From assembly GCA_965637545.1 (NCBI GenBank), contig OZ281500.1, positions 620,001 through 684,000 of the forward strand: a stretch of 64,000 nt of DNA, given 5' to 3'. The stretch comes from Phallusia mammillata (taxonomy: Eukaryota). Positions 28,807 through 64,000 of the stretch are shown one piece after another. Each line of letters opens with the position of its first letter. Within the stretch, counting starts at the first letter, position 1. The position numbers were made by a program, and so were the translations under genes. The notes beneath the pieces were generated by a model. It saw only the letters and a program-made list of their open reading frames with translations, did not search any database and was not told where the DNA came from.

Positions 28807-31492
28807 ATGAAGTCTTGCTTAGGTTTGATATTTGTTGCATTGATTTCGACGGTGACTCGTGTCACCTGTCAAAATGCCAGCGTACCTGTCAGTGTCACAG
28901 ATGCCAGCACAGAAGGTGCCACCAAACATCTCTGTCCGAGTATTTACAAAAATATCTACGACTTTGGCGGGCAGAATTGCTGCAAAGAAACATACGAAAC
29001 CTTCATAACCAGCTACAATTACCTGGAGGGAATTGGGTTTGCGTTTACCATGGAGAAATTGCGAGCGTGGAACTGTAGTGAATATTGGGAGCAATGTAAA
29101 TACAGACCACTGGCATTTAACCAGTTCAGCTCTCTTCTGTACGACCGGTTCTGCAACTTCACATTATACGAGAGCAAGTGTTTTGACGAAATAAAAGGTT
29201 GGTCTGGTTAAAGTGGCTGTAATTGTTGTTTGTTAAACATGTTTTCTGTCCCGTGCGTTAAAGTTTGTTCAATATGACCGAAAAAGTTGAAAGTAGCGGT
29301 AATACTTATACTTTAAGCGTGAAACTAGATTCTCCCAACTCCTTGCTTGGCAGGTGGTGACTTTAATGAACCGTATGTTTTTATATCAAGTTTATAAAAA
29401 AACAATAATTCATTTATCCTTTAGATTCCTTTAGAATGTAGCGGTAGTTACAATATTAAATGGCTGATGTTTAATATGGCGAAAAACACGGGACAAGCGT
29501 TTTTCGAAGCTCATGTATTTTACAGCATTGGGGAATAATGTGGAAACATCGGTAGCGGTGAAATCCCCGTGTCTGCAAGTCGCTGCGTATCAAACCGGTC
29601 GCAAATACGCTGAGGTCAGACGACTTTCGGTCGCTTTCTGCGGAACCGTTTGGTGCGGGTTTGACGAGAAAATGATGATTGATTTGGATTATTCCGCCTG
29701 GGATTGCTATCCAACCTCGTGAGTAATGCGATGTTGTCATAATTCTATTTTTGTTAAAATTTTGCAACAGTGCACCGTTGCCTGCAGCAAATAAAAATTA
29801 ACAAACGCGAAACGTACCTATAACAAGATTTTATTGTCAAGTTTAATAAAGTTTCACAGATATCAAAAGAAGTTAATTGTAACAAACGAAACAGAAAGTA
29901 TCGCATATCTGGCAAAATCGTTAAATTGCCAAGTAATTTATGTAAAAGCATGGAGCCAATAAATGATAAGCTGCAAACAGTGCACACTGTTTCGACCTAT
30001 AAGGTCTCATCAGTGCAGCTGGTGACGAGAGATCGGCCGCATTGGCTAGTGTAGCCATCAAATGGCACTCCAATTTGTGGTGAGCAACAGGGTACAACCC
30101 CATGCATCACCTAGTCTGTGCGATGCCACAACTGGGCATAGGCTACAGCACAGATGAAACTGGCTCACAAGTCACAATGACCAAGCAACTGCTTGGGAAC
30201 CAGCTGCACTGATGAGACCTTATATGTCGAAACAGTGTGCACTGTCTGCAAAGTAATTGTTTGGCACTTAGACATTAATCGAAACCTTCAAGTTTCTTAG
30301 AAATTGATAATCTCGGGTTGTTTCCAGATGTCAAGTCAGCACGATTGTGATTATGGCAATCAGTGGGATCCTAGCAGTCGTGACAACGTTGGCGAATGCA
30401 ACGATATTGGCTGTTATTACCCGAAACCCCAAGTTCAAAGGAGGTCATATGAAGTACAGACAGTCTCTTGCCGTTGCTGATCTGCTCGTTGGGATTTTTG
30501 TATTTCCCTCATTCATAGGAACGCTGTACTACAACGAAATCGGTCCGCTGTCAGTCTTGCCTGACTTAGTGACCTCCAACGTGTCACGGTATAACCAAAC
30601 TGACATGGGATTAGAACCCGGTGCGCCAATGAGCTACATCAACTTCGTAGGATTTGTGACCTGTCTGTCACTTATGGTGTCAGTTTACACTTTGATGTTC
30701 GCAAGCTTCGACAGATACAACGCTATCAGCTCTCCGCTTTCCTACTCTAGAGACACATCAGTACGTCGTGCCAAGCAACTGATCGTGGTGGTCTGGATCA
30801 TCTCCGCTGTTGTTTCTATCCTGCCCATCTGGACGCCGAATGTCCGACCTTACTTGCCGATAGTTGGAGGTTTAATTATCGGTGTGACACCCGAAGTGGG
30901 CGCCATCTTGTACGCGGTAACTCTCGCCCTTCCGCTCCTACTGGTCTGGATATTAAGCATCGCCACCATGTGCGTTGCTAGGCGACAAGCGCGACTCCGG
31001 AGTTCGATGGTTTCACGACAAGCCACGGGAAAAGCGAGCGTGGAGAGTCGCCTCAACAAGACTCTGTGGATCATGGTGACAGCATTTACCCTCAGCGTTC
31101 TGCCTGCTGCCCTTCTCAGCATGTTAAGCGGGGTCGGTCAAATCAGCTTCAACTACCCCGAAACACTGGACAAGGATGCCGCTTATGTCTTCACAGGTTT
31201 AGAGGTGGTCGCGGCGATGCTTCTGATGTGTAATAGTCTGTGGAATTGCTTCATCTACAGTTTGCGTAACAAGGACTTCAGGGCTGAAGTTTTGTCAAAG
31301 TACAGCAAAGTTTTCTCAGCATTTCGCTACATGGTTGTGTGTTCATGTTGTGGGTCTGTGGCGAGGGACGGAAGACGGAGGCTCAGCTCGGCCTTCACCA
31401 GTTTCAGACCGAGACAACGTAACAGAACCATTTCCGAGAACGTTACTCAACTGACATCTGTTGGAACCACCAAAGGACCGAGGAACACGTAG
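28807..31492 (+). CDS. GPCR-1: 12-Cys ectodomain + class A (rhodopsin-like) 7TM receptor, 3 exons
   Basis: Exons 28807-29197, 29526-29718, 30328-31492 (phases 1 and 2). Signal peptide MKSCLGLIFVALISTVTRVTC; 12 Cys; SLAVADLLVG (TM2), SFDRY (TM3), MCNSLWNCFIYSLRNKDFR (TM7/H8). Confidence 0.85.
29972..30250. mobile_element. MITE with ~50-bp TIRs in GPCR-1 intron 2
   Basis: TGCAAACAGTGCACACTGTTTCGACCTATAAGGTCTCATCAGTGCAGCT is mirrored by AGCTGCACTGATGAGACCTTATATGTCGAAACAGTGTGCACTGTCTGCA. Confidence 0.85.
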
Positions 31493-31931
31493 ATATTACG
31501 TAGCTGGAAAATGTTGGTTACGCTGTCAGCCATGCAGTTTGTGTATTACGTCATAATCAGGAATTGTTCTTTAGGTTTCACTAACGCTAAGCAAAAACGA
31601 GATCTGTACTTTACAATTCTTAATTTTATTCATTCATTACAAAATGCAGGAAAAATATACATTACATTTGCGATACAGTTTCTGTCACATTTTCTCGTCA
31701 TGGCACAAGGTTTTGTAAAAATGAAACAAAATATTATCAGTTTTTTGTTTCCATCAGTTAATATTTCAAATTGACATCATTACGCTACTTTATGCTCAAA
31801 AAGACTGTCATGTTTTCACGTTTACGTAACAAATCAGAAACCTTTCTGTGACATTTTCGCGATGTGAAGATCACTTTACAAGTCGAGCACAAGTAATTTG
31901 GTATTAGTGATTGCTCAACACGACCCTATTT

Positions 31932-32044
31932 GTCACGTGGTTCACACTAGGCGGGTTATGTCACGTGATTTAACACTTGGGTGGTCGTGTCACGTGATTT
32001 ATCACTTGGGTGGTCGTGTCACGTGATTTACCGCTTGGGTGGTG
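31932..32044. repeat. 28-29-bp tandem repeat x4, each unit carrying CACGTG
   Basis: GTCACGTG starts at 31932, 31960, 31989 and 32018; unit GTCACGTGATTTA.CACTTGGGTGGTCGT. Confidence 0.85.
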
Positions 32045-32329
32045 AAGACTATGCTCAGTGTACATGGGAAAATACAGGTTCGACATTAATATGTGTCGGT
32101 TTGACAATCGATGTAATTTGTGTGGGAAATATGGTTGACGCAATTACACAGGACAATATTACAAACAAAATAGGAAGACGTTCTGTTTCGTTACCTCTCT
32201 TGTTTTCGTTTTTCCATTTAAAATAAATACGTTGTACATGTGTGGCATAGGAAAAAACACAGGAGAGAATTCCTTGCGCCCTTTCAGCTTAGCATAACAA
32301 CTACATTAGCTTGTAGTGAGTGTGATGCT

Positions 32330-34469
32330 TTAAACTTCATTTTCCTCAGCGATTCCCTCCATGGTTGAAACGAACAACCGATCAGCATTAACATCGATCA
32401 CATAAGAATCGAACACTGAATCTGCCATCGCACTTTCCGACTTGTCGCTCAATTGTGCTGACTCATTATTAGTCGGCAATTTCGTGTTGGAATTCACATC
32501 GGAAGTAGTTGGAACGTTTTCGCTGAAGCCTTTGCTCGACTTGCTTTTAGATTCGGTCTCAGTACTTGCGCTGGTCAGGCGTGATTTATTTGAAGAAATC
32601 CCGCTGACTTTGGTGCTCTGTGCGTTGAACTGGGTACTTTCACGACGCAGCTGGTTAAGACGACTCCTTGTCGAATGAAAGTTTTTACGGATGTAGCCGA
32701 GACATTGTGTTATTCCCATTTTTGCCGCCAGTTCGCTGTACATGTCGTGCACTTCACCACGAAAATCCTTGTTCCTTGTGTTGTAGATGAATACGTTCCA
32801 CAGGCTGTTCGAGACTAAAATCACCACGGCAACAAACTCAGATGACGCAAACACCAACGCCGATGTTAAATCCAGCTGTCTGGGTTGAGAAAATTGAGTT
32901 TTCGGTAATCCTGAAAATGAAGCAGCGAGTACGACGATTGAAGGCAGCAAACATGCAGTGAATACTCCGACCATGATTGTCAGGGTTTTTGCGAGTCGAG
33001 CTTCAAGGTTTTCGTTACGTCTGCGGGACCTCGATGAAATATGTCTGCGGACCCGCGCGTGTTGCTTCGCCATCATATAAGTAGCAACTGTGGACGTCCA
33101 AACCAATAGAAAGGGAATGAACAATGCAAGTGCGTACATTATAACCGCTTCTTGTCCGGCTGAGCTGATGAGCACAGAAGCAACGAGGTTGTATTCAACC
33201 TGGGGCACGAAGAGTGGAAGACTTGCAAACAAGAAAGCAACCACCCAAATAACCACACAGAGAATACGAGCAAGTTTCTCAGCCTCGTGTTGGTTGTACT
33301 TCAACGGTTTAAAAACTGCCCTGAATCGGTCGATGCTTGCCACCATTAAAGTGTAAACTGAAACTACAAACGATGTGAGAGTAAAGAAGCCAACGAAGTC
33401 AATGTAACTGTATGAGATATGCTTGACGAAATCACCCGTCTGTTTGCGAATGGATATGTTAGTTGATGCGTTCACGTTTATACTTCCGTTGACAAGTGGG
33501 AATCCAATCACTTTCGTATCCACAGCTGCTTCGACTGACGGCCACACGAGCACTCCAAGTGTACTAATGCAAGTTGGAACAACTATCACACCAACGATGA
33601 GGTCAGCACAGGCCAATGACAGCTTGTAAACGGACTGGCTGTTCCGGAGTTTTTTGTTGCGACGAAATACTCCAATCACTGTGACGTTGGCTGTTATGAT
33701 GGCGATGGACAGGATGATTAACCCGATGAAAATGATAACAATGTTGGCACGGCATCTGTAAATGCAAAACAAATGTGTCTATATTTGTACTTTAATTGTA
33801 GGAATTTTTCGCAAGTGAGGTAGTATACCTAGCGCTCAAGCAGTTCCAGATGTCAATCACGCCGTTCCGGTATGACGCGTCATCCGTTCCGCACCAGTTG
33901 AGTTCACAGAAAGGCAAATTCGGTGCGACAGCCTCGTGATATTTGCCAAACTTATCATCGGATCTTTCCTTCTCGAACAAGGCGAGTTGAGTGCAGGGTC
34001 GCAAAAGTTGCTCGGTGTTAAGACGTGACGAGTCGAGCTGACCAACCATCGCTTGCCACGTCAACGAACTCACAGACTGTGGAAGAAGACGTGACACTTC
34101 GCTCCGACATGAACTTTCAAACTCTATTTGGTTGCAAAAGTACAGATAAACTGTTTTTGCAAACGGATTGAAATCGAAAGTCGGGTTTCTGCATTCGTTG
34201 GCGAACTGTGGACATTGCCACGATTTTAACATGAGCATGTACGTCGTAAGGTAGGATGCTCCATTTCGCCATTGAAACATCATCCAATCTTCCGATATAT
34301 TGCAGCAGTATAGTTGGTACGCCCTATTGCCCGGCAAATAACCAGGAGCAAAACCGCAATCCACCTCTGCTATACTTTGCAACGTATCCTGGCCATGACT
34401 TGTACTAACCATACAGATCAGGAAAATGGCCACAGCGATTAATAGGGAACTTCTAAATCCTGCTAGCAT
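32330..34469 (-). CDS. GPCR-2: 12-Cys ectodomain + class A 7TM, 2 exons
   Basis: Exons 34469-33829 and 33755-32330, with a 73-nt phase-2 intron (AG|gtatac...tttacag|A TGC). SIDRF; VSNSLWNVFIYNTRNKDFR; long Ser/Thr tail ending FDSYVIDVNADRLFVSTME. Confidence 0.92.
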
Positions 34470-36219: not shown

Positions 36220-36250
36220 GTCAAGACAGTAAGGAAATGAATGCTTAGTT

Positions 36251-36799: not shown

Positions 36800-38565
36800 G
36801 CTTAGTTAATAGCATGCTGTTTGAAAACATATTCGCGTATGTGGTAAACGTAAATTAAACACGACGCTAATACTAGTATGTTTTACAATTGGGAAACAGT
36901 GCTGAGACTGGGGAAGGCAAAATTAGGCGTTTTTAATTGAGTTTTGAAGTATTTCTGACATTCTGAAACAAATCTGCCAGTTTAATATCAGCTAAGCTTA
37001 TAGTCTATTATCCTTGCTGTATATTATGTTAAAATCGAAATCTCGATAAATAATTTTGTTTCTACGTTTATATTTCGAATTAAAAACGGTGTAAGGGGCA
37101 CCAAATTGTTTTAGTGCTTAGGGCCTCTAATGGTGTTAATCCGGCCCTGCGTGTCAGTAAAACTTTTGTTTCATGCGAAAACACTTCACTGCTGTTGCTT
37201 TGAAGTGCGTCACACCCTGTTGACATCACCATTTCTCATCCGGTTGTAGTGAGATGGTGAGACTTGATCACATATGATGACTAACCGATAAAGAGTTACA
37301 ACGCATGCAGGTGAAATCATCTTTCTACTACATTTGTTTTGTCTATCTTATGTCGCAATTAAATATGCTGGTTTCATTTTTACATTTGCAATCATTGCAG
37401 TTTATGCAAAAATAAATCCATGAGCTTAATAAATTTATGCAAACATTTGGTAAATGAAACGAAAAACGAAACTGCTTGGAATTATCCCGGGTTTGCAGTT
37501 ATTTTTATTCGTGTGTAATTAATCTTTCCGTATTCCTCTCACGCTATTCTTCCACGAACAACGTGCTTATTTTATTACGCAATTGCTGCATGATGGAACC
37601 TCCCTAATGCGAAGGAGATAACCTGCATGAAGAACACACAAGTTCGGGGAAAACTTCAAGTTAACTTCAAGTTTGTGGGCGAGGTCAATAATTTTTCTTT
37701 TTTTAATTGCACAGGAATAAGACAATTCGACATACTTCAACGTACTTCAACGTTTATGCACCTTTAGAACATTTGAAATACAACTTAGCTTAGTCGTTTT
37801 TGGTCACAGTGTTTTTAGAGTCTGTTTTATGTGCTTACAAGCTTTAAAACATGTTTTGTAAGTGAGTGGATAATATCTGCAAGATGTTCGCCGCAGTAAT
37901 TCTGTGTTTTTAGCCTCGCAAGCAAGAAAGCGGTATATGTCATGTACTACTTTAGTGAGCCTTCCATACGTGTCAGCAGTGCAGAATTAAATCAAGACCT
38001 AATGCTTCGAAAAATTACCCGAAATAGAAATATACCGTGCATGAGGTGAGTAAATTAGAGCAGAACGTGTAGCGACGAAGTGGTGCGCGTATAAAAGCCA
38101 ACCTCGATGTTCATGTGCACGTGTTGAGGGAACCTCAGACAACAAGTTGCAAACGGTGAAACATGTTGCTGTGATTCAGTGTCTCTCAGCTAAAAACATC
38201 GAACTACGCAAATGCAATTAAGAATCACCAACCTGTATCAAGTTGCGTGTTGCGTAACAGCCGAGTTTGTCAGGCAATATTGTTTCTCAGAAGTCTGTGA
38301 CTTGAGCACACCTATTGTTTTGTTGTCGGGTTGAGACTATTTCGCAGGGGCAAACAATGCATTTGGTAACACCAATAAGACGGATATAGTTATACAATGT
38401 TGAAAGGTTGGAGAACGTTGTATACTATAAAGTACACACCGATGGATGGAAGTTAAATCAGGAAAGGCATAGGTTTACGATACTACTATATGTCATCTAC
38501 AAGCTTTTTTTTCTACTTTAAGATCATTTATTTCCAAGATAATTGAAATTGAAGCATTCTATAAC

Positions 38566-40753
38566 ATGAAAGTTTTTCTGTGTCTGCTGCTTGGTCTGGC
38601 ATTTGCGAGAAGTTCAATGCAATCCCACTTGGATTTGGAGACCGAAATAAATCGATGTGGCTTTGCTCCCGGTTACCGACCTGGAAACGAAACCTTCCAA
38701 CTACATTGTTGCAACGTCAGTGAAACCAACATGCTCAAAAACTGGAAGAAAGGTTCCTTATACCTCACGACGTATTTGCTCAACTTAAAATCGTGGCAAT
38801 GTCCTCAGTTCGCCAACGAATGCAATAAACCGACTTTCGATTTTAATCCGTTTTCAAAAACAGTTTATCTCTACTTTTGCAACCAAATAGAGTTTGAAAG
38901 TTCATGTCAGAGCGAAGTGTCACGTCTTCTTCCACAGGACACGCCGGTCAGTTCGTTGACGTGGCAAGCGATGGTTGGTCAGCTCGACTCGTCACGTCTT
39001 AACATCGAGCAACTTTTGCGACCCTGCACTCAACTCGCCTTGTTCGAGAAGGAAAGATCCGATGAGAAGTTTGGCAAATATCACGAGGCTGTCGCACCGA
39101 ATTTGCCTTTCTGTGAACTCAACTGGTGCGGAACGGATGACGCGTCATACCGGAACGACGTGATTGACATCTGGAACTGCATGAGCGCTAGGTATACTAC
39201 CTTACTTGCTAAAAATTCCTACAATTAAAGTACAAATATAGACACATTGGTTTTGCATTTACAGATGCCGTGCCAACATTGTTATCATTTTCATTGGGTT
39301 AATCATCCTGTCCATCGCCATCATAACAGCCAACGTCACAGTGATTGCAGTATTTCGTCGCAACAAAAAACTCCGGAACAGCCAGTCTGTTTACAAGCTG
39401 TCATTGGCCTGTGCTGACCTCATCGTTGGTGTGATAGTTGTTCCAACTTTCGTAAGTACACTTGGAGTGCTCATGTGGCCGTCAGTTAAAGCAGCTGTGG
39501 ATACTAAAGTGATTGGATTCCAACTTGTCAATGGAAGCTTGCACAACACCTCAACCATTGCCTCATACCAAAAACCAACCGGGTATTTAGCAACACATCT
39601 TACACGGGGTTACGTAGGCTTTGTTGGCTTCTTTACCCTCACGTCGTTCGTAGTTTCAGCTTACACTCTAATGGTCGCAAGCATCGATCGATTTAGAGCA
39701 GTTTTCAGGCCTTTAAGGTACAACCGACACGAAGCCGAGAAGCTTGCCCGTAGTTTGAGCATCGTCATATGGATCATCAGTTTTATATTTGCAAGTCTTC
39801 CACTTTATGTGCCAGGACTCAACTACAGTCTCATCGCTTCTGTGCTGATCGCATCGTCAGGTTCGGATGAGGTTGTTGTCCTTTACGCCGTCGCTATCGG
39901 AATCCCGCTCATAGTGGTGTGGGTCACAACTACATCAACGTATGTAATGGCGAGAAAACATGCGAGAAAGCGAAAGAACATCTCGACCTCTTCACACGAT
40001 CGTAACAAGAACATGGAACAACGACTTGTCAAAACTCTGGCCATCATGGTTGGTGTTTTCACGTTGAATCTCCTTCCTGCTATTATTGTCCTTGTTGCTT
40101 CGATCGGTTCAAGCAACATTAGTTTCTCGAAACCGAAGCAACTTGATTTGATACCAGGATCGATTTACGCTTCGTCGGAGTTTGTGGCAATAGTCGTGCT
40201 GGCTTCCAACAGTTTGTGGAACATGTTCATCTACAACGCAAGGAACAAGGATTTTCAGAATGTAGCTGACAGCATGTTTGAGGGAATCAAATCCACCCTG
40301 GGAATAACCAGATGTTTGCACCAGATTCGAAGTTCGTGCGGCTCCACCAAGCGGAGGTTGTCTAGTACAGGAGGAACAGTCTCATCCCCTTCCACCAACT
40401 CAACCGGTCTGTCATCGAAAAAAACCACCTCCTCTCAGAAGTTTTCATCAACCAGCCCAACGCAAAGCAAAACGATGAAAAGCTCAACATACAGCAGTTC
40501 CGCTATTGATGAAGAAAGCGTTAACCAATCCGAAGGCAACAGGAAAATAAAACAGGCACATAGTGCGACATCTGCCGACTGCGATGTAAACTCCAACACG
40601 AAATTGCCGACTAATAATGAGTCAGCACAACTGAGCGACAAGTCGGAAAGTGCGATGGCAGATTCAGTGTTCGATTCTTATGTGATCGATGTTAATGCTG
40701 ATCGGTTGTTCGTTTCAACCATGGAGGGAATCGCGGAGGAGAATGAAGTTTAA
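38566..40753 (+). CDS. GPCR-3: 12-Cys ectodomain + class A 7TM, 2 exons
   Basis: Exons 38566-39191 and 39265-40753, with a 73-nt phase-2 intron. SIDRF; ASNSLWNMFIYNARNKDF; C-terminus identical in protein to GPCR-2. Confidence 0.92.
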
Positions 40754-42121
40754 AGACTCACACTCTGTATTTATTGTTATGCGACCGACCTTTTTGGCGT
40801 GTTTCTACACGAAAAACCAATAAAACAGTTTTCATTAAAACGGGGCATCTTAATTGAAATATACCGACGGTTTGAGGTCAATAGAAATAGTGTGCTGGTT
40901 CAAAAAACAGATGATTGTCTTGTTTAGGCTTTTACAAATTTGTCCGACATAAAGTGTAAATTAGAAATGGTTGCATATCTTTTTCCCGTTTCATATTTAT
41001 GTCATAGGTTGCTCTTCACGTAAAAAGGAACGAAGAGTGTGACCAAAACGTCACGTAGATTATGTCATCAACCTTTAGCGGTTTACTAGAGAAGCGGATG
41101 TAAGTTACGCCATATAACAATGGGCAGTGTGACGTCACCTTTACGCAATACACGAGTTAGAAAAATTGCGGCAGGAAACTGAAATTTTCACCAACGCGCG
41201 TCAGATGGTGTAAAGCAACTTCTAATTATGACGCCCGTTGTCACGCCAACGCCGGAAGATTAATGGCGGAAACGGAAAGTCTATTAATATAAGTTTTCAG
41301 TTAAACTGCTCGTTAGTAAACTGTTGTTTAGATATTTTTGCTGTGCCCTTAAAAGGTGCTTTGAAACTTTATGAAATGATCTACTTTGCACCAGTGCTTA
41401 TTTATAGATGACACTCACCACAAACATTACATGATAATCTATGTTTGAATTATGTCAACTGATCTGGCATAGTTTTAAAAATCTGTGTTATTCTCAACAT
41501 TTGCATCTTTACCGATAATGTTAATTAGCAATGGATTATGTTGCATTGTTACTGGTTTTACATTTATATGTTTGCTTGTTGTTTTCACAACCATCGTGTG
41601 TAATGTTGTGGCATTTAATATTTCTGTGCGCGGGCTCCACTTCGCGCCAAAACAGTTCGAGCAATGACGGGTGTTTGACGTCACATATAAAGCATGTCAT
41701 GACGTGTAAAGCGTGACAGGGCCGCGCTTGTTGCATCGGAAACTGACTTAGTAATAAAAAGTGGCATAATGCGAATACTCAAGACGCCTGCCAAGACGCG
41801 AACCAAACGAGCTGCGCGGGTTTGTATAGCGGAGCTGATTATCGTGCAGCGGTTGTTTTGCGAAATTCGGTTTACATTAAAGTTTGACAGCAGTGTTAAA
41901 AATGTTGTGTTGTTTAGTTTTCTTTGTGTATTTGAATAAAACAGTGGCAGAAATAGATTTGCTAATAGGTTTAAGCACGATATAAAATTTTGAATCTTTG
42001 TTGTAACTTGCTTCTACGAAAAAACCCCTAAACCTGGTTTTGTCTGTCTAGAAAGTTAAACTGAACATTGATTTACTAATATCGTGCAAAACTGAAACTA
42101 AACTTGAACAAGATAAACGCT

Positions 42122-48503: not shown

Positions 48504-51117
48504 TTACATGGCTGTGTTTGTATTATCATGATCAGTTGTGTCAGTCCTGTAGTTAGTTGTCGCTTCAAGATGAATGGCGTCATCGTTGCTGGTTGTAAGT
48601 CTGTCTTCCTCTTCTGGTGACCATTTTATCAGCATTTTGCATAGTCTTTGCATTCCGAGCCTTCCTGCACAGGACGTGTACATGTTGATTGTTGCCCTAC
48701 GGAATTCCTTGTCCCTTGCGCTGTAAATGAAGCAATTCCACAGACTGTTGCACATCAGGATAAAAGCGGTCACAGCCTCTGCCGAGTTAAACGCCACTGC
48801 TGACGATTGTACGAGGTTGTCGGGGTCAGACAGGTAAATGTGGGGCAGAAAGAAGCTTGTAACCATGACAACAACTGCGGGAAGGAAGCTTAACGTGAAC
48901 ACGCCGACCATCACGGCTAGTGTCTTGGCCAGATTTGCTTCGGTTCGACTTTGTCGTTTTGTGGTCCCTGTCGGACAGATGCTCTTCCAGTGAACGAGAT
49001 ATCTTCGCGCAAAGCAATATGACGCGACACCCATTGTCCACATCGCTATAAGTGGCACTGCAAACGCTACAATGTAAAGGATAAGTGCTTCTCTGCCCAC
49101 CGACGAAACTAGTATTGATGCAACGAGTCCGTAGCGAAGATCACTGACAAACAGGGGTAGAACCGCCATCAGTATGGACAAAAGCCAAATTACCAACACC
49201 GGTATTAGAGCCTTGGGCATTGTCGATTTTGCGTTGTATTGAACAGGTCTTCGTAACGCATAACAGCGGTCTGCACCTGCAGCCACTAGTGTGTACACAG
49301 ACACACAAACTGACAATATTGTCCAAAAACCCACAAAGTCAATATAACTGCGCGGAAGCCGAGCTTCGAACAGTCCTCCAGCGCCTCTAACGGTCGACTG
49401 CTCTTCCAGCAAGTTTCCGTTGACAGCAACATATCCGGTTACGTTCGTAAGTGCGCCGACCGAATGTTTTATATGAAATTTGTTGTAGAGCGAACTTGCG
49501 AACGTCGGGAATACGATCATTCCCACCAGAAGGTCACCGAGTGCAAGGGATATGCGGTAGATTGCCTGATTGTGTAGAATCCTTGAGTGAAGTAACGCTA
49601 CAATCACTGTCGCGTTAGCTGCTGTTGTCATCACGGCAAATATCAATGAGATCGCCATCATGGCAATTATGCCTCCTCTGCAACTGTGGATATGCGAACA
49701 ATGTAAAAAATACGATAACTAATTCCTCAAGCAACGCCATAACCTTGCCTTTTCCTTTTATCAATACTAGATCTATAGGGCATGTTTTTTATATATATGT
49801 TTCGCTTTGATGGCGTCGTATTTATTAGTGATGTACCGAATCGGCTAAATTTCGATTCGGCCGAAACCGAATATTCGCCGGTTTTGCCGAATAAATTCGG
49901 CCGAATCAACCGAATCATTTATGACGTCACGCAAAGTCGTACGTTACGCGTTTGACGTGAAAAAAATGTTTATCTACCAGGCAGCCAGTGCAAAATAGTT
50001 GTGTTTCGTCCTTATTTCACTTCTGTGGGGTTTAAAATTGCCTTAAGCATGATTGGCAACCTGCCAATGAATTACTAATTTTTTTGACTACCGTGGGAAA
50101 AACGATAATGTGTTGAATAAGATAAACATTGACGCAATTTTCGTTATGTTTGGGCTTTTGAAAGATTGCGTGGACCTTAATAAGCAGAAAAGACACGTTT
50201 AACGCTTTAAATTTGTGTTCGTAAAAGATTCGGTTTCGGCCGAATCGCAACAAATTATTCGGCCGAAACCGAATCTTTGCAAAAATGATCGATTCGGCCG
50301 AATAAATTCGGCAAACCGAATATTCGGTACATCTCTAGTATTTATTACCAGTGGCTAACGTCCAATCAAATCATCTTTTCACGGCGCAGTGCGTTTATTA
50401 GCCAAAAAAGGCTGTTGCGTTTGTGGGTGAGGATATCCTAATTATACCGGGCATTTTGCTATACACCTGAAGGTACTCGTTATATAGAAGTAGTACAGAA
50501 GTGGCGACGAACCTGTTTGGCATGCAAGTCCACACCGATACGCGTCCAGCCTCAACGACGGAGTTATCAAACCCACACCACAGAAAATCGCAAAACGGAA
50601 CCAATGGTTCGATCACTTCGTGGTAATTTCCAAATCCACCTACTTCATACATTGCCGCTTGCACGCAAGGCTCTGCTAGCTGTGATGATGTGAGACTTGA
50701 TGGTTTTAGTTTTGAAATCGAGGATGTCCAGTTGGTGTTGATTTGGTTGGCAGCAGATGTAACAATTGGTAAACATTGCGATTCGAATAAAGTTTGGTTG
50801 CAAAATTTCTTGTAGGTCAATCTTGCGAATTCGTTGTATGCAAAGGTTTGAATGCTACACTCTCGTTCAAACTCGGAACAATTCCATGTTTGTAGTGTAT
50901 TTAGAAACGTTGTGAGATAGGAGCGTCCCCACGACCATTCATACTTGAAGTTTTCATACACAACCGAGCAGCAGCGGTTCTTTTCTTCATTAGAAGGAAA
51001 TATAAAATTTGGTGCAAATTCGCATGTGCTATTGTCGGTGGTCCTTGCAGCTATTAATGTCGGCATTAAACATTCAAAGCATAGAACCAAAAAGACTGCT
51101 GAACTTGTATATTCCAT
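48504..51117 (-). CDS. GPCR-5: 12-Cys ectodomain + class A 7TM, 2 exons
   Basis: Exons 51117-50513 and 49683-48504 (AG|gttcgt...ccacag|T TGC). GADRC; MCNSLWNCFIYSARDKEFR. Confidence 0.9.
49826..50337. mobile_element. hAT-type MITE in GPCR-5 intron
   Basis: TIRs TAGTGATGTACCGAAT / ATTCGGTACATCTCTA; exact TSD GTATTTAT at 49818-49825 and 50338-50345; dense CCGAAT/ATTCGG subterminal repeats. Confidence 0.92.
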
Positions 51118-53545: not shown

Positions 53546-55682
53546 ATGTCAGTAGCAAGGAAGTTTGTAACCTTGCTTGTGCTGGTGTTAGCGATTGTTG
53601 TGGTGGGTTGTAAAGCTAACCACCCTGTCAATTGTGAATACGCTCCAGGAATGAACGTTAACACGACCGTGTGTTGCGATTACGTGTCCAGACAATTTTC
53701 TTCCTACTGGGCGAGTGGCGAATTTTATTTGACGTCATACCTGGCAAGTTTGAAGGAGTGGAACTGCAAACAGTTTGACAAGGAATGTCAGCAACGGACT
53801 TTCGCGTACACCCGGTTTAGCGGTCTTGTGTACGACCGGTTCTGTGGCGACAATGTTCTGGTAGAGCAATGCAGTGCAGAGGTTATTGGGGCGACTCTGG
53901 CGCAGAATTCGTCACTTTCCAGAACTTGGCAGAACGCTGTAAACGGTTTGGACGCCACAAAATTGTCGGACGATCAACTGCGAAGTCCGTGTTTGCAGAT
54001 TGCCATGTATGAACGAGATTCAGGAGGTTTTTCACATTACCATGAAGTGATTCAACCATTTACTCCCTTCTGCTCGTTCGTGTGGTGTGGTTTTGACGAG
54101 AAACTTGTGAAGGAAGGCAGAGTGTCGGTGTGGACGTGTTTACCACAATCGTAAGTTGGATGATATGTTGTGCGTTGCAAGCAAGATAATGTGAGCCTTT
54201 CAAACATAGCTTACATTAAAAGCAACATGGGGATCAAGATCTGGTCCAGAGTAACTGCATAATTTAAACAAGTGGTAAAGCAAATAAATGATAGATAAAA
54301 AAGTTGCAACTGTAACAAGTTTATATTGTGTGCTGTAACATCGAAAACTTAAAATCATGGCCCATATGCAACATGCATGCCTATCATATCCGGTGATGTC
54401 ACGAACACGTGACTGTCAATTGTTTATGATGTTTATGTATCCGGGTTTATGCAGACAATCCTCGAAGCCTCTTCCGTGTTTAAATCTGCTGTGTTTATGT
54501 TCCAGATGTCGGTCAAGCATTATAGTAATGATGGTCTTCAGTGTGCTGCTTGCAATTGCAATAATCGTTGCCAACGCGACCGTCTTGTCCGCTTTGGGGA
54601 AATACCCTCGCATACGCCACAACCAAGCTATTTACCGCTTCTCTCTGGCGCTCGCCGACATCGTGGTTGGTTTGATTGTGTTCCCTACATTCGTCAGCAG
54701 TCTGTACATGCAATTCCACGGCTCACACGAGCTCGGAAAACTACGCAATGTCACTGGTGTTGTTGTCAACGGCTCGCTGGTTCCACAACAGTTTGCTGTA
54801 CGCGACCCTAGCGGCCAGTTTTCCAACCGCGTTCCACGCCAGTACCGTAACTTCGTCGGATTTTTCACAGTCCTGTCACTTTCGGTGTCGATTTACACAT
54901 TGGTTGCGGCTGGAATTGACCGCTGTGTGGCGCTCTCGTTCCCAGCTCGTTACAGAAAAACGTCGAAGGTTCCAATCGGCTTGATTGCGAATATTTGTAT
55001 TTGGATTCTTTCTGTTATATTTGCTGTTCTCCCGTTTGCTGTGGACTTACTGGGTTACACGCTGGTTGCGTCCATACTTGTGTCATCATCCGGCCCGACA
55101 GTTCTAATCCTTTACATCATAATCTTCGTGATTCCTCTAATTCTCATGTGGACTGTGACCATCGCTTCTTACGTCATATCGCGGAAATACGTCATCAGCT
55201 GGAGGCGGTATTCGGTCGGTGACGATCCGACAAACGGACAAGGAGCAAGCGAGAGTCAGTTGGCGAGAACATTTGGAATCATGGTCGGTGTCTTCAGCTT
55301 AAGTCTCGTTCCTTCGATCATCGTGTTGATCTGTGGCGCCACCTTGAGCACGATCTACTACAACAGACCGAACGAATTGATCCAAGAGTCCGCTGTCGCT
55401 TACACGTCAACCGAAATCGTGGTGATATTTATTCTGATGTGCAACAGCTTGTGGAATTGCTTCATCTACAGCGTGAGAGACCGGGACTTCAGGGCAGCAT
55501 GCAAGGAGATGTACGGGAATGCTGGTGCGATGGTTGGATTAAAGTGTTGGCAAGTTGAAGAGGTGGAGAGGACGAATGGTGTCGCAATGGAGGGGGGAAA
55601 TTCTGACGACAACTTTCCACAAACGCTTGCTTCTGGCGTTGATAAGACCGTGGTGGATAACGCTCAAACCACTACCATATAA
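53546..55682 (+). CDS. GPCR-6: 12-Cys ectodomain + class A 7TM, 2 exons
   Basis: Exons 53546-54150 and 54506-55682 (TC|gtaagt...ttccag|A TGT). GIDRC; MCNSLWNCFIYSVRDRDFR. Confidence 0.92.
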
Positions 55683-56329: not shown

Positions 56330-58474
56330 ATGTCTGTAGCAAGGAAATTTGTAGCTCCGCTTGTGCTTGCGTTAGCGAGTGGTTTGGTTGATTGCAAAGC
56401 TCAGCAACCTGTGAGTTGTGAATACGCTCCAGGAATGAACGTCAACACGACCGTGTGTTGTGATTACGCGTCCAAGAACTTTCACATCTTATGGTCGAGC
56501 GGCGAATTTTATTTGACGTCATACCTGGCAAGTTTGAAGGAGTGGAACTGCGATCATTTTGGCAAGGAATGTCGGCAACGGACTTTCGCGTACACCCGGT
56601 TTAGCGGTCTTGTGTACGACCGGTTCTGTGACTACGATGTTCTGGTAGAGCAATGCAGTGCAGAGGTTATTGGGGCGACTCTGGCGCAGAATTCTTCAAT
56701 TCCAAGAACTTGGCAGAACGCTGTAAACGGATTGGACGCCACAAGATTATCGGACGATCAACTGCAAAGTCCCTGTTTGCAGGTTGCCATGTATGAACGA
56801 GATTCAGGAGGTTTTTCACATTACCATGAAGTGATTCAACCATTTACTCCCTTCTGCTCGTTCGTGTGGTGTGGATTTGACGAGAAACTTGTGAAGGGAG
56901 GCAGAGTGTCGGTGTGGACGTGTTTACCACAATCGTAAGTTGGATGATGTGTTGTAGGTTGCAAACAAGATAATGTGTCAGTTATAAACATGAACCACGT
57001 CAAAAATAACTGGTTTGACCTAACGTATCTGTAACTGTAAAATTTAAACATGTGGCGAGGCAAATAATTGGTAAATCCCAAATGTTGCAGCTGTGAGCGG
57101 TTTGTATTGTGTACTGTCGCGCCGAAAACTTTAAATCCTGGCCCATATGCAACATGCATGTTTGTCATATCCGGTGGCATCACGAACACGTGACTATCAG
57201 TTTTGAGCTGTTGATTACGATGTTTATGTGTTGCGGTTGATTTGCAGACAATCTCTCTAGTATTCTAGTATTTCAATCTGTTGTGTTTATGTTCCAGATG
57301 TCGGTCAAGCATTATAGTAATGATGGTCTTCAGTGTGCTGCTCGCCATTGCAATAATCGTTGCCAACGCGACCGTCTTGTCCGCTTTGGGGAAATACCCT
57401 CGCATACGTCACAACCAAGCTGTTTACCGCTTCTCTCTAGCGCTCGCCGACATCGTGGTTGGTTTGATTGTGTTCCCTACATTCGTCAGCAGTCTGTACA
57501 TGCAATTCCACGGCTCACACGAGCTCGGAAAACTACGCAATGTTACTGGTGTTGTTGTTAACGGCTCACTGGTTCCACAACAGTTTGCTGTACGCGACCC
57601 TAGCGGCCTGTTTTCCAACCGCGTTCCACGACAGTACCTTAACTTTGTCGGATTTTTCACAGTCCTGTCACTTTCGGTGTCGATTTACACATTGGTTGCG
57701 GCTGGAATCGACCGCTGTGTGGCGCTCTCGTTCCCAGCTCGTTACAGCCAAAAGTCGAAGGTTCCAATCGGCTTGATTGCGAATATTTGTATTTGGATTC
57801 TTGCTGTTATTTTTGCTTCGCTTCCTTTTGGTGTTGACTTATTAACTTACCGGTTTCTGGTGTCTACACTCGTCTCATCATCTGGTTTGACGGTCATTTA
57901 CCTTTATATTGTGATCTTTGTGATTCCTCTAATCCTCATGTGGACTGTGACCATCGCTTCTTACGTCATATCTCGGAAATACGTCATCAGTTGGAGGCAG
58001 AACTCGGTCGGTGACGATCCGACGAACGGACAAGGAGCAAGCGAGAGTCAGTTGGCGAGAACGTTTGGAATTATGGTCGGTGCCTTCAGCTTAAGTCTCG
58101 TTCCTACCCTTGTTGTGTTGGTATTTGGCGCCACTTTGCCTACTATCTACTATGACAGACCGACCGAGATCGACCAAGAATCCGCTGTTTCCTTTATTTC
58201 AGCTGAAGTCGTGGTGATATTTATTCTGATGTGCAACAGCTTGTGGAATTGCTTCATCTACAGTGTGAGAGACCGGGACTTCAGGGCAGTATGCAAGGAG
58301 ATGTACGGGAATGCTGGTGCGATGATTGGCTTAAAGTGTTGGCAAGTTGAAGAGGTGGAGAGGACGAATGGTGTCGCAATGGAGGGGGAAAATTCTGACT
58401 CTAACTTTCCACAAACGCTTGCTTCTGGCGTTGATAAGACCGTGGTGGATAACGCTCAAACTACTGCCATATAA
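56330..58474 (+). CDS. GPCR-7: tandem paralogue of GPCR-6, 2 exons
   Basis: Exons 56330-56934 and 57298-58474; exon lengths (605 and 1177 nt) are the same as in GPCR-6. Confidence 0.92.
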
Positions 58475-59105: not shown

Positions 59106-59650
59106 CATAGGCGCCGAGTGGGCGGTGGCGGGGTGGCGCCGCCACCTTGGGATTGTAAAGCACGGTGGCGGCCACCGTGGATATTTTGATTTGTCTGTAG
59201 CGGTATAATACGAAACATCGTAAAATCTCAGGAAATTTAGCAATAATTTTGCTTTTACACAAGCATGCTGACATATAAGCAACAAAACGTGTCGAAACTG
59301 CAACTTGCTTTGGTCAGTGCTTTGTTTATGACGTCAAACACACAATTGTTGGCAGTGAATGTATGGCCATTATATTGTACTGTAATAAAATGTTATTTAG
59401 GTGATACAAGAGCAACAACTTGACGAAACATTTTCTGAGCGTTGCTAAACCAATCAAAACGTTAAAGCAAAGTGTTTCAAATGAACATTAGTATAATTTT
59501 TTTTAAGACTTTGACGAAAGTTGCATTCTTTAAAAAAAAATTCTGCTTTGAGTTGGAGCTCGTATGGTTGCACGCTTTAGTTACGTCACAAAAAGTGACG
59601 TCATAATTTACGTCCGCCATCTTGCATTTTTGTAAAACTCGGCGCCTATG
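59106..59650. mobile_element. hAT-type MITE
   Basis: TIRs CATAGGCGCCGAGT / ACTCGGCGCCTATG; exact TSD ACTACGAT at 59098-59105 and 59651-59658; GGTGGCG subterminal repeats. Confidence 0.9.
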
Positions 59651-61141
59651 ACTACGATTTTAGCAAAAACTTAACCAAACTATGTCTCGGAAATATTTGT
59701 TTTGGGCAACTAATATTAAACATCTTATTTTTGAGCTTTGCTCATGTCAAACGCTGAACAATTAGTGTTGCAAACCAATTTTGCAAGTCACTGTGCTAAT
59801 AGTGGTGTTTGCTTTTAATGTGAATACGTTTGCGATTATAAATTTAGTCCCAAGCCGTGAGGTAAAATAAAATGTCAAACGTCGTAAGAAAGTAAGAACG
59901 CGAGTTATAAATAACGAGGCCTCTTGGAAAATATGGTAATCAATTATTACAGATGTCGTCCACCAAAATAAAACACAAACCTTAGAAATATGGACCATAC
60001 TTGCACAAAGTGATGTTTATGAAGAGATCTTAAGCTTACATTTGTTGTAGTGTATCGTTCACATTTCCAAACAGTAACTCAACTGTTTATTCCGTGCTTC
60101 AATTCCTAGCAATAGCACGCTTAAACAGTAAAAAAAAACCGACTTTCAATTGTAACCACAAAGTTGTTGCGGAATTTGTAAGGCCAAACCACTGTTTGTC
60201 AATGTGTGGTGTTGCATTTGATAATCAACAAACCAAATCACGTCGCGTACTCATCAAGAAAGGTAATTAATCATAGCAAGTCACGGTGCAAACATCTATT
60301 GCCCTGTTTACTGGTGATGGTCCCGTTACTATGTTGTCGCGATTGTTGGTTGTTTACAGTTTTGGAACCCAGATTCGACCAAACACAATAGTTGGGAAGA
60401 AGTCAGTGTGAACTATTATAAACGTTTATAGTGCAATCTATGTGTCAAATATTTGCAGTTTGTGTAGATCATACATAAAGAATTGTTTGCGAAGTGAATT
60501 ATTTTTTTGGCAAGGACAATATATTTTAAAGTTCCCCTAATCGACGTTAAAATGGTGGTGAATGCTTGATGACCGACTGATTCGGTATGGTGCCTTCAAA
60601 GGGCCAGGCCTACTGTGATTTATTAATCGTGTGTTTTTTTAGGCGTGTTTTGGCGTAGGCTACGCCACCCTCCGACTCACTAGTCGTGCAAAAAGTCGTG
60701 AGAAGAGTGTTTAGTCCACAGCTATGTACGACGTCACCAATTGAACTGCCACGATGTATGGTACAAAAAGGGCTTGTGTACTTGTGTTGAAAAACGTGCA
60801 AAATTGGTATTGTAGTTTGTTGTCGTTGATACCTGCTGATTGGGTGTAGAGTTGGAAATGCGAACTAAATATAAAACTTCAACTAATTGAGTTTCTGATA
60901 TTGTTTGGGGTTACCAGGTAGGATGTTGTCTAGTTGTGGTCTACATGTTCGAAAAAGTAATATCAGTGAAAGATTATTAACGACCTGTAGTTTCAGGTGA
61001 TAATTCATTTTTTAGTCGTACCCTGATTCTCTGAAATGTAAATCAACGACTTGAAAGAAACAACCAACTTTTAAAACCTGTGTACCTTATCGGTCTTGAT
61101 AGTACCGTCATAGGTTGATCGTTTTGTTGCTTGACATTGTT

Positions 61142-62965
61142 ATGTCTACGTTGTGTGGGAAGTTACTCATATTAACGTTCGTTGGCTCTTTAATGTTTCC
61201 TGAACTGTGTGCGGTGGAACACAGAAACGTGACGCCACAAACAGTCACAAGTGACACAAAGTTTCTCACATACAGCACTTCTATTCATTGCAAAGCTCTC
61301 ACCCGTAAGTTTCACTCATGGTGGTTCACGTTTAAAGGCGGGTTAGCAGAATATCTTGCGACCCTTCGATCTCTGGGTTGTCCGTAGTTTAAAGAAGAAT
61401 GCAGCAAGAGATTGCTCGCCATCCCTTTCCCTCTCTCATCTACGACAGCTTCTGCTCTCCACAAAGCATCGTGGACAAGTGTTACCCAATGCTCAAGTCG
61501 CTGGTGAAACGTCGCAATTCTAATTATGACAACATGACTATAATACTTCATCGTACGATTGGGCTTCAGCAGCTGATCTTTTAAATGATGTTCGGCTTTC
61601 GGAGAATGAACTGAAGGAGCCTTGTGTCCAGGTTGCCTTGTATGAAATATCAAACTGCACTTTTCATGAACTTGTGATTCATAGTGCTCTATTTTGCTCC
61701 GTGCATTGGATGGGATACGATGCAAGAATGGACGTAAACCGCCGCTTAACGCAATGGAAAATGTTAGATCACAGGTAAACTGGTGTAAACTTTTTTGCCA
61801 AAACTGTTTGTGACTATAACGGCATTTTGAAATAAAAGCACTTGAAAACGACTGAGCAAACTTTGACATGTTTAGAGGTCTTGAATATCCTGTATTCATA
61901 AGGTGTATGTATAATTTCAACACTAGACAGAAGGCATACCTTATTGTAACCCTACCGTGTCTCAGGTGCCATATCAACACTTACATACTTCAAGTAGTGT
62001 GCGGTATTTTATCATTTCTTTTCACCGCTGTGAACTCTCTGGTGATAGTCGCTATAGCGAAAGAACCGAGTCTACGTCATACCCAAGGCATCTACAGACT
62101 CTATCTGGCAATATCTGACGTCATGGTGGGAGTTATCGTATTTCCTGCATCAGTTATTAATCTATGGATTTTAACGCATGGAGTGTTGAATAATTACAAG
62201 GAAGAGAATAGTTTGTGCGAGAATGGAACTAGTATTTACTCGCCAAGGGAATGGCAATTCCGGTTTACAATAGATTCACCTCAGTACATTGCCTTTGTTG
62301 GTTTCGGAACGCACTTGTCATTATTTGCATCCGTTTACATTCTCATGGTAGCGGGATTAGATCGACTCCGGGTTGTAATACATCCTCTGAAGTATCGACA
62401 AGACATAGCTAAGAAAACAGCCTAACGGGCTTGTATCGTTGTGTGGATATTGGCTTTTATTTTTGCCACACTTTCATTTTTTCCTTCTATTTCGACGTAT
62501 GTTTTATATACTTCGAGCTATGCTATATTGATAGGTAAATGGGGTTATGTGATATACGTGGTCGCTTTAGTTTTCCCGCTCTTAATTGTCTGGTTTGTCA
62601 ACTTTGCCACTTATTTCTTCACAAAACTTAACAGCCGCGCTACATCGAACAACGGGATTGATCCGGTCGAGGTACAACTGGCAAAAACCCTGCTTATGAT
62701 AACCTTGGCCTTCACCTTGAGCATCCTGCCATCGATTTTGCTGTTAATTGCTCAAATGAGTGTAACCGATATTGGTTTGCAGCGGCCTGAAACCTTAAAC
62801 ATTGCCGCATATCTGAATGTCAACGCGCTTGAATTCGTTGCTTGGACAATTTTATCATCCAACAGTTTATGGAACTTTTTTATTTACAGCGTTCGAAGTC
62901 CTACTATGCGAAAAGCGATCAAATGCTTGTTTGTAAATATGTTTTCTAGAAATTCAGCTAAGTGA
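61142..62965 (+). pseudogene. GPCR-8 pseudogene (same family)
   Basis: Exon 1 ~61142-61774 has a TAG at 61385 (CP*F where paralogues have CPQF) and frameshifts near ~61415 and ~61530. The phase-2 intron is retained in place (AG|gtaaac...ctcag|G TGC, exon 2 from 61966). There is an in-frame TAA at 62423 after GLDRL; SSNSLWNFFIYSVRS is still recognisable. Confidence 0.88.
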
Positions 62966-63614
62966 CAATTTACGCGGTGTCAACCACCTTTACCATTTTA
63001 GCACATTTGTTTATTGTTTTCAAATCGGTTGCTTGCAAAAAAAATTTGCCTTCGTGAAAAAATGGTCTCAAGGCATTCAGTAAAACTTTGTCTTAATTAA
63101 TTTTGTTACAAACGCTTCAGTAAAAACCTCTGCAACTATACAGCGCTTGTTTGCGTGGTTTTGTGGTTTTGCTTTGTGCCATACAATATACAAATTTGAG
63201 AAAATCTTATCGGATATATGATAATACTATTCATTTAAGTTAGGTTTGCCACATAATATTGTGCTATGTTGCAAATTGGACTGATTTTGTCAAAGACAGT
63301 TTTCCAAGCATTTACACATGAGGTGTGTCGTGAGGTTGGTCGAACTTGACTTGGATTGAGTTTATTTCGCGTGGTTAAATAAACAAGAAGGACTTGCATT
63401 GAATCAATATTTAAGTTGCAGCAAAGTGCGTTGATCATTATTTGGGTGAGAAAGCAGCACGAAAGATAAATAATTTACAATCGATAATTTGCTTTTGTTT
63501 TTTTAAGGTTAAATTTTCTGAGGACTATTGGTGACATTTTCTTTTTCCATTTGAAATAAGTTTGAATTTTGCAAAATCAATTTGTACAACAACGAAGCAC
63601 ACGCAGTAAAACTA

Positions 63615-64000
63615 TTATTTGTTGGAAATTGCGTCGAATTTACGCATGACTGATTTCAGGAACGTGTCCGTGTTTGCATTGATGCGGAACGACGAGAGTG
63701 GGTGATCCCCCGTATCTGAAACCGAGGTCGATTCCTCCTCATAACCATCAAGTCGACACACTGTTCGGTTAAACTCGAAACCGAAGCTGCTACTTCGGCT
63801 CGAATTAAGAGTCGATTCCGATTCTCTTCTTGACATTTTTCTCCACCCGTTGTTTATGTACGGCGTTGTAGATGTTCGACGTTTGGTGCATAAACCCGTG
63901 AAAAGCTGAATACTGGGTCTTATGACAGGCAAACGTGTGACTCTGTCCCCTAAAGTCGACATTAGCTTTCTCAGTGACGCACGGAAGGTCTCGTTGCGTG
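63615..64000 (-). CDS. GPCR-9: C-terminal fragment (helix 8 and tail); rest outside window
   Basis: The frame reads RNETFRASLRKLM..., matching the RN(K/L)(D/E)FR helix 8 of the paralogues, and ends SSFRINANTDTFLKSVMRKFDAISNK*, the same distal motif as GPCR-2/3/4. Confidence 0.75.
   Translation of the reverse strand, partial: RNETFRASLRKLMSTLGDRVTRLPVIRPSIQLFTGLCTKRRTSTTPYINNGWRKMSRRESESTLNSSRSSSFGFEFNRTVCRLDGYEEESTSVSDTGDHPLSSFRINANTDTFLKSVMRKFDAISNK

Follow-up and report, generated by a model that had tools for sequence, protein, structure and literature searches.

The locus examined here raises the question of whether two kinds of open reading frames (ORFs) that repeatedly lie side by side, one short and rich in cysteine (Cys) and the other encoding a seven-transmembrane (7TM) protein, are parts of the same genes, and if so, what kind of receptor they would build. 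The window, by which we mean the whole 64,000-nucleotide (nt) stretch of Phallusia mammillata contig OZ281500.1 that was analyzed, was described in an earlier note as carrying a tandem cluster of at least nine receptors in which a 12-Cys ectodomain is fused to a rhodopsin-type 7TM body. We find it probable that a tandem array in the window, made up of seven functional genes and one that is dead, belongs to a tunicate-specific group of class A G protein-coupled receptors (GPCRs), which would be peptide-responsive with the ectodomain contributing. Within this reading, we are nearly certain that the intact genes encode functional, fused GPCRs.

The ORF listing for positions 28000–64000 contains seven Cys-rich ORFs of 160–240 amino acids (aa), each of which lies directly 5′ of a 380–530-aa ORF on the same strand, as had been described from the letters alone. 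When in-frame GT..AG pairs are enumerated between the ORFs of each pair, we obtain one shared solution, namely a phase-2 GT-AG intron that interrupts g1–g7 at the same codon and separates the ectodomain from the 7TM body. This boundary intron is found 3–4 codons past a conserved W-x-C and one codon ahead of the Cys that opens the first transmembrane helix (TM1), and it varies widely in length (609 nt in g1, 73 nt in g2 and g3, 437 nt in g4, 829 nt in g5, 355 nt in g6, and 363 nt in g7). Once spliced, g1–g7 each run from an ATG start without an internal stop and encode proteins of 582–755 aa, with a hydrophobic, signal-like stretch at the N-terminus and a mature ectodomain that contains 12 Cys, such that both the canonical in-frame splicing and the Cys count that had been proposed hold for every intact gene. 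Searches by tblastn with the window ORFs, together with six-frame scans using hidden Markov models (HMMs) of the ectodomain and the 7TM body, resolve eight loci between 28807 and 62965, consisting of the seven intact genes and one pseudogene (g8). With the same methods, no further copy is detected in 1–28000 or 62966–64000, and the proposed count of at least nine is accordingly lowered to eight.

Contigs from sequencing runs labeled as putative RNA, aligned to positions 38500–44499, show directly that the two ORFs are joined. In g3 (38566–40753, + strand; 704 aa), a contig from run X8 has a joint at 39189/39263 that skips 73 nt, with 184 letters on the shorter side. With the cut shifted by +2 nt, this joint becomes the GT..AG pair at 39191/39265, in agreement with the modeled exons 38566–39191 and 39265–40753. 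In g4 (42122–44826, + strand; 755 aa; exons 42122–42831 and 43269–44826), a 981-nt contig from run X1 joins 42831 to 43269, skipping 437 nt with 534 and 447 letters on its flanks. In run X10, which is likely DNA (same organism; 0.92 of words shared), a contig is contiguous across the g4 intron and neither joint is present. The spliced model of g2 (32330–34469, − strand; 688 aa), in which the ectodomain exon (34469–33829) and the 7TM exon (33755–32330) flank a 73-nt intron, is identical in every residue to the public 688-aa Phallusia mammillata protein P0001 (UniRef/nr). Furthermore, the Ci-LF-1 receptor of Ciona, as deposited by the authors who matched it to its ligand (BBC53701.1, P0185), includes the ectodomain. 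Wherever tested, the ectodomain and the 7TM body thus belong to one transcript, as observed in g3 and g4 and supported in g2 by the database protein, and the possibility of separate transcripts, which the earlier note had named as a refutation, is contradicted at these three genes.

The putative models of g1, g5, g6, and g7 rest on the homology of their junctions to the confirmed ones. In g1 (28807–31492, + strand; 582 aa), which is recognized by tblastn, HMM, and splice-site reading and forms a single ORF once spliced, the ectodomain is split over two exons by an additional phase-1 intron (29198–29525), giving exons 28807–29197, 29526–29718, and 30328–31492, and it is because of this extra intron that the first ORF is short. 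The g5 gene (48504–51117, − strand; 594 aa) has exons 51117–50513 and 49683–48504, while g6 (53546–55682; exons 53546–54150 and 54506–55682) and its recent duplicate g7 (56330–58474; exons 56330–56934 and 57298–58474), both on the + strand and 593 aa in length, are defined by HMM scans and splice models. The last locus, g8 (61181–62965, + strand), identified by HMM scan and by reading all three frames, is a pseudogene with at least two frameshifts, an ectodomain that is spread over three reading frames, two replaced conserved Cys, and two in-frame stops, one within the conserved CPQF motif of the ectodomain and the other a TAA at 62423–62425 in the 7TM part. Its GT-AG intron (61775–61965) is nonetheless kept. 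We additionally observe that the donor GTAAGT produces an in-frame TAA at the domain boundary in g4, g6, and g7 (42830–42837, 54149–54156, and 56933–56940), and that in g2, g3, and g5, the reading frame past the donor stays open for 13–36 codons. As predicted from sequence, intron retention in g4, g6, and g7 would yield a secreted ectodomain that ends at the domain end.

What, then, is the ectodomain? None of 14 ectodomains has a real match in Pfam. With E-values up to 10, we find no match in this set to the Frizzled cysteine-rich domain (CRD; PF01392), HRM, GAIN/GPS, Venus flytrap, leucine-rich repeat (LRR), or LDLa, and Pfam likewise reveals no adhesion-type domains. Together with the lack of a solved counterpart in the fold searches described below, this bears out the initial impression that the ectodomain is unlike the LRR, Frizzled, HRM, GAIN, and Venus flytrap types. 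The O-methyltransferase dimerisation domain and DUF3188 were rejected as identities, as their Pfam matches are at chance level only. Across 34 family members, all 12 Cys-rich columns belong to the ectodomain if the Cys at the first turn of TM1 is included, and the extracellular loops (ECLs) contain no conserved Cys column. Conserved polar residues of the ectodomain include Q161, E179, and D196 of g2. Two of these residues, C38 and C55 (g2 numbering), are mostly lost jointly, including in the Ci-LF receptors, which consequently have a 10-Cys version, and C193 and C210 are lost jointly in five sequences. This pairwise loss suggests that C38–C55 and C193–C210 are disulfides, and six disulfides are predicted per 12-Cys ectodomain.

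The ectodomain (~180 aa) is modeled confidently as a mainly α-helical domain that runs straight into TM1. In the AlphaFold2 model made with the 14-sequence alignment (mean predicted local distance difference test score, pLDDT, of 83; predicted template modeling score, pTM, of 0.77), the signal peptide of g2 is followed by approximately eight helices (49–168), a β-hairpin (177–196), and two short helices. Six fold searches of the Protein Data Bank (PDB), the AlphaFold DB, and the ESM Atlas with this model recover no structural relative except for GPCR-profile proteins. Foldseek against the PDB gives a best E-value of 0.69 with a template modeling (TM) score of 0.14, and VIA-align against 48,161 PDB representatives gives a best Z of 3.9 (stated background best of 7–8), followed by 2.9 in a second look. 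The ESM Atlas fold search reaches a TM score of at most 0.30, and the best match among the Swiss-Prot models of the AlphaFold DB has an E-value of 0.56. In the AlphaFold DB clusters, only the query's own protein and two "GPCR family 1 profile" proteins, F6UX23 (TM score of 0.79) and E4YX06 (TM score of 0.46), are returned.

Three further candidates came from other comparisons. Ferritin appears in the PDB sequence search with one ectodomain at an E-value of 0.2, and it was rejected as a chance match, with its Cys out of register and no fold support. The insect odorant-binding proteins (PBP/GOBP; AgamOBP4), whose six-helix fold has three conserved disulfides, give a profile match with an E-value of 0.07, in which two ectodomain Cys stand opposite non-Cys residues, and no odorant-binding protein is found in the PDB fold searches (Foldseek and both the wide and second-look VIA-align runs), leading us to reject this candidate as well. 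Finally, the ESM Atlas feature search points to nematode DUF19/CPG4 at 0.85, which is below the trust level of the tool and is accompanied by no Pfam match, and for this lead, the AlphaFold DB clusters and Swiss-Prot models provide no match outside the GPCR-profile proteins. In the literature that we searched by full text, the ectodomain is not described. The words extracellular, cysteine, and ectodomain are absent from the 2019 study of the Ciona receptors, whose only remark on the N-terminus is that N-terminal regions could be replaced to rescue the expression of failed candidates (PMC6475428). In those passages of the 2008 Ciona GPCR survey that match our search terms, many Ciona-specific receptors are placed in "Other/Unclassified Rhodopsins" and the ectodomain is not mentioned (PMC2396169). 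It looks as though the ectodomain is unrecognized by the databases and literature that we searched, and we consider it an overlooked domain whose fold is apparently new.

The assignment of the 7TM body is more straightforward. The 7TM ORFs of g1, g2, and g4 match PF00001 (7tm_1) with 88–104 bits against a cut-off of 30.5 (E-values of 1e-25 to 1e-29), confirming the rhodopsin-type identity that had been proposed. Each of N1.50, D2.50, DR[L/F], W4.50, P5.50, P6.50, and Y7.53 is present in 31–34 of the 34 family members, and F6.44 and N7.49 are also kept. In the same set, W6.48 is replaced by L/I/V and P7.50 by F/C, and the TM3–ECL2 disulfide is missing, as there is no conserved Cys column outside the ectodomain. 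These three features are frequent in class A but not universal, and for this reason, class A (rhodopsin-type) membership stands despite their absence.

A full-length AlphaFold2 model of residues 1–575, made with 34 sequences (pLDDT of 85.9; pTM of 0.82), provides a view of how the two domains may be arranged. The TM1 helix starts at residue 213, only two residues past the last ectodomain helix, and there is therefore no linker between the ectodomain and TM1. The last ectodomain Cys is in the first turn of TM1, ECL1 is modeled as a long β-hairpin (292–318), and ECL2 as a short one (401–413). The pTM of this two-domain model suggests that the ectodomain is held in a fixed placement on the extracellular face.

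We next consider where this architecture is found. A search with the 7TM ORF of g3 returns 24 proteins, Phallusia among them, and all of the named ones are from tunicates, including the Ciona intestinalis "Ci-LF-2 receptor" and "Ci-LF-5/6 receptor," and the N-termini of the Ci-LF receptors align with the window ectodomains with their Cys in register. When a profile of the 14 ectodomains is run against 1.84 billion representative proteins, 201 matches are obtained at E-values ≤0.001 and 109 at ≤1e-30, with each match being a cluster at 50% identity. Among the 30 of the 201 that were looked up, all named ones come from Ciona, Clavelina, Styela, or Botryllus, and one cluster (P0062, which includes P0185) holds the Ci-LF-1 receptor. 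As judged from these searches, the family is tunicate-only among named proteins. Many of the profile matches are 200–270 aa in length and stop exactly at the exon boundary, and we read these as exon-1-only gene calls, which do not prove that the ectodomain also exists as a separate protein. The names that family members received automatically are in conflict and unreliable, ranging over cannabinoid, dopamine (D1B), beta-2 adrenergic, histamine H2, melatonin, thyrotropin, and Gq-rhodopsin "like" labels, and because of this disagreement, it is evident that annotation pipelines do not recognize the family.

The gene structure and its genomic arrangement extend beyond Phallusia. Ciona P0173 and Styela P0040 also have the phase-2 boundary intron, placed at the codon used in the window genes, and it is therefore ancestral at least to ascidians. 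In a 25-kb region of Styela clava (OZ123517.1), three paralogues stand in tandem on a single strand and share this phase-2 intron (3.1 kb in the queried gene), and thus, tandem clustering of this family is not special to Phallusia. Separately, JGI/IMG metagenome contigs of 1.9 kb contain an intronless, full-length member of 583 aa (P0123) that sits on a very long branch in our tree, and its source may be a metatranscriptome or a divergent tunicate.

To place the window genes relative to the receptors with assigned ligands, we inferred a maximum-likelihood tree from 40 full-length sequences (ectodomain and 7TM body, with C-terminal tails trimmed). The Ci-LF-1, -2, and -5/6 receptors form one clade with Phallusia P0011 and one Clavelina gene (support of 100/98), and the window genes fall elsewhere. 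The g5, g6, and g7 genes cluster with P0031 of Ciona and P0015 of Clavelina (100/100), g1 joins two Clavelina genes (95/85), and g4 groups with Clavelina P0029 and P0096 (99/97), with g2/g3 as the weakly supported sister of this last group. The window cluster hence brings together members of three or more subfamilies older than the divergence of these ascidian lineages, as well as the recent duplicates g2/g3 and g6/g7. By this topology, the window genes are orphan paralogues within a wider ectodomain-bearing family and not orthologues of the LF receptors. The earlier proposal of a lineage-specific, expanded family is supported insofar as the family is expanded and restricted to tunicates among named proteins; it is not new, however, as the cloning and ligand matching of Ciona members date from 2019 (PMC6475428). 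In this sense, the family had already been described, which goes part of the way to what the earlier note had listed as grounds for refutation, although the description is found in the literature on the Ci-LF receptors (PMC6475428) and not in InterPro. The family is that of the known Ciona LF receptors and is represented in public protein sets, where g2 is P0001, and the window adds to it seven orphan members in three old subfamilies.

The recent duplicates also provide a measure of selection. The ratio of nonsynonymous to synonymous substitution rates (dN/dS) between g6 and g7 is 0.59 for the ectodomain and 0.25 for the 7TM body, and the g2/g3 pair gives 0.36 and 0.21, respectively. Both domains are under purifying selection, with the ectodomain being less constrained. 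Nucleotide identity between g2 and g3 is patchy. It reaches 98–99% in codons ~133–280, which cover the C-terminal half of the ectodomain and continue through TM2, and in the final ~45 codons, but is 42–69% over most of the remaining 7TM body and tail, with a single block of the tail at 27%. The identity between g6 and g7 is similarly patchy, and this pattern fits gene conversion between neighboring paralogues in both pairs.

How might such a receptor work? We propose that a cleavable signal peptide is followed by the ~180-aa, helical 12-Cys ectodomain, which would be joined without a linker to a divergent, intact 7TM body. The ectodomain would be locked to TM1 and probably also to the long loops, and as a rigid unit on the extracellular face, it could contribute to the site at which ligands enter or bind or else stabilize that face, possibly standing in structurally for the ECL2 disulfide that the family lacks. 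Upon encountering short secreted peptides, the window receptors would signal through G proteins. The precedent for this proposal comes from Ciona, in which putative full-length GPCRs were cloned and fused to Gαq16 and their calcium responses were measured (Shiraishi et al. 2019; PMC6475428). In these assays, nanomolar amounts of short endogenous peptides activated the paralogues, which signaled via the promiscuous Gα fusion, with half-maximal effective concentrations (EC50) of 5.25 nM for Ci-LF-1-R, 0.71 nM for Ci-LF-2-R, 1.55–4.78 nM for Ci-LF-5/6-R, 2.04 nM for Ci-LF-7-R, and 1.35 nM for Ci-LF-8-R (PMC6475428). Among the roles that had been suggested for the window genes, peptide reception remains the best-supported guess, and by analogy with Ciona, the chances that these particular receptors have peptide ligands may be considered roughly even. 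A direct part for the ectodomain in ligand recognition is, in our judgment, also close to evenly balanced. A bolder version of the proposal is that the ectodomain, with its 10–12 Cys, is a new domain family and fold confined to tunicates, which arose once on its own exon, ahead of a class A 7TM body, and is required in the peptide-binding site; the family would then be the first in class A in which a rigid helical cap, rich in disulfides and joined without a linker, serves to recognize very short peptides at two sites, replacing both the ECL2 disulfide and the W6.48 toggle. This we advance only tentatively, as somewhat less probable than its converse.

Several observations weigh against the peptide-receptor reading or parts of it. 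RNA support is limited to g3 and g4, with g2 added through the database protein, and g1, g5, g6, and g7 follow by homology. The contacts between the ectodomain and the loops, as well as the disulfide map, derive solely from pTM, secondary structure, and the co-loss of Cys pairs. The Ciona assays were performed on the whole receptor. In addition, g1–g7 all fall outside the clade of ligand-matched Ci-LF receptors (100/98), which contains another Phallusia gene (P0011), and it follows that the window receptors may have ligands other than LF-type peptides, or ligands that are not peptides.

Three other explanations were considered. It is somewhat unlikely, but credible, that the ectodomain is a cap for structure or trafficking only, with ligand specificity residing wholly in the 7TM pocket and the long ECL1 and ECL2 hairpins. 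A stabilizing lid of this kind would fit the loss of the TM3–ECL2 disulfide and the linker-free fusion to TM1, and among paralogues with different ligands, the ectodomain shows strong conservation of its core and its Cys; the faster evolution of the ectodomain than of the 7TM body between recent paralogues (dN/dS of 0.59 versus 0.25 and 0.36 versus 0.21), however, fits a role in specificity. The tandem birth-and-death expansion, which is apparent in the pseudogene and recent duplicates here as well as in the Styela cluster, and the sheer size of the family (201 clusters at 50% identity) are reminiscent instead of chemosensory receptors, in which case the window genes would detect waterborne cues at the siphons with the ectodomain as a built-in odorant-binding module. 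The weak match of the ectodomain profile to insect odorant-binding protein 4 (E-value of 0.07) would be in line with this, but it is not significant and has no fold-search support. Moreover, five Ciona members answer endogenous neuropeptides at nanomolar EC50 (PMC6475428), and the retention of orthologue groups across ascidian orders under purifying selection is unlike the fast turnover of chemoreceptor families, making a chemosensory function improbable to our eyes.

Large, folded, disulfide-rich modules that are encoded on their own exon and set off by a domain-boundary intron often bind proteins, and it could be argued on these grounds that the ectodomain has a protein or a matrix component as its binding partner, or that it serves self/non-self recognition, with the 7TM body only transducing, as in adhesion GPCRs or LGR-type receptors. 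Yet short neuropeptides alone suffice for the full activation of Ciona relatives that bear this ectodomain (PMC6475428), neither adhesion-type domains nor GPS/GAIN are found with Pfam, and the ectodomain dN/dS of 0.36–0.59 comes without hypervariability. We therefore regard this explanation as very improbable. The self/non-self role in particular, which the earlier note had entertained, is rejected together with diversifying selection: dN/dS is below 1 wherever measured, nothing points to hypervariability, and the orthologue groups also include Ciona and Clavelina genes.

The known ligands of the Ciona relatives are peptides of only 5–9 residues, and the question raised by the family is what role a rigid cap with six predicted disulfides plays on a class A receptor for such very short peptides. 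If the ectodomain does belong to the binding site, the N-terminal replacement proposed for failed candidates (PMC6475428) would remove it. Naming the ectodomain would mend the conflicting automatic annotation of these genes, and we believe that it merits both a name and a solved structure.

Two features of the window stand apart from these questions. Near the C-terminus, the tails of g2, g3, and g4 share an acidic motif, D-S-[VI]-F-[DN]-S-[YF]-x-I-D-x-N-A-D-R-L-F, at about 32330–32450, 40630–40753, and 44700–44826, respectively. It is restricted to these three genes among all family members fetched and could be a trafficking or scaffold-binding motif. Upstream of the cluster, a 1055-aa ORF (14405–17572, + strand) has a signal-like N-terminus, and within it, an acidic unit of 42 nt (14 aa) of the EEVPKVQGEDTINQ type is repeated ~49 times in tandem, with 84% matches. 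Its product is probably a secreted, repetitive acidic protein, and this tandem repeat ORF is the cause of the strong AT skew and raised GC at 14–18 kb.

Among solved structures, the adenosine A2A and beta-adrenergic receptors are the nearest to the window 7TM body (phmmer E-value of about 1e-14), and A2A and beta1AR align with the full-length model at a target-normalized Foldseek TM score of about 0.8 over about 345 columns, with no solved GPCR in this fold comparison covering the ectodomain. The alpha-group class A receptors, to which these and the cannabinoid/EDG receptors belong, differ in having only about 20% identity to the window 7TM body. Within class A, the cannabinoid/EDG receptors also lack the TM3–ECL2 disulfide, a feature they have in common with the window family. 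The LGR and glycoprotein-hormone receptors provide a parallel in layout, with a class A 7TM body preceded by a large, folded N-terminal ectodomain that is encoded apart from the 7TM exon, whereas the window ectodomain is helical and Cys-rich and has no LRR or LDLa match, hinge region, or linker. The CRD of the class F receptors Frizzled and Smoothened is likewise extracellular and placed ahead of a 7TM body, for the most part helical, and equipped with about 10 conserved Cys; however, the 14 ectodomains have no match to PF01392 or to a solved CRD, and the window 7TM body is of class A. With the class B1 secretin-type receptors, in which a disulfide-rich ectodomain and the 7TM pocket jointly recognize a peptide, there may be a functional analogy only, as the window ectodomains have no HRM and a different fold.

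The Ci-LF receptors are the nearest named relatives. The "urochordate LF-R clade" to which they were assigned is without a close non-urochordate relative, with 21–26% identity to cannabinoid, adenosine, and adrenergic receptors (PMC6475428). The window genes differ from the Ci-LF receptors in belonging to three other subclades and in having 12 Cys, with the extra C38–C55 pair that is not present in the LF receptors. Nevertheless, the homology is full-length (7TM E-values of 1e-62 to 1e-66 and 36–40% identity), the 10 core Cys of the ectodomain are in register, the same divergent set of class A motifs is found in both, and the phase-2 intron at the domain boundary is shared with the Ciona family member P0173.

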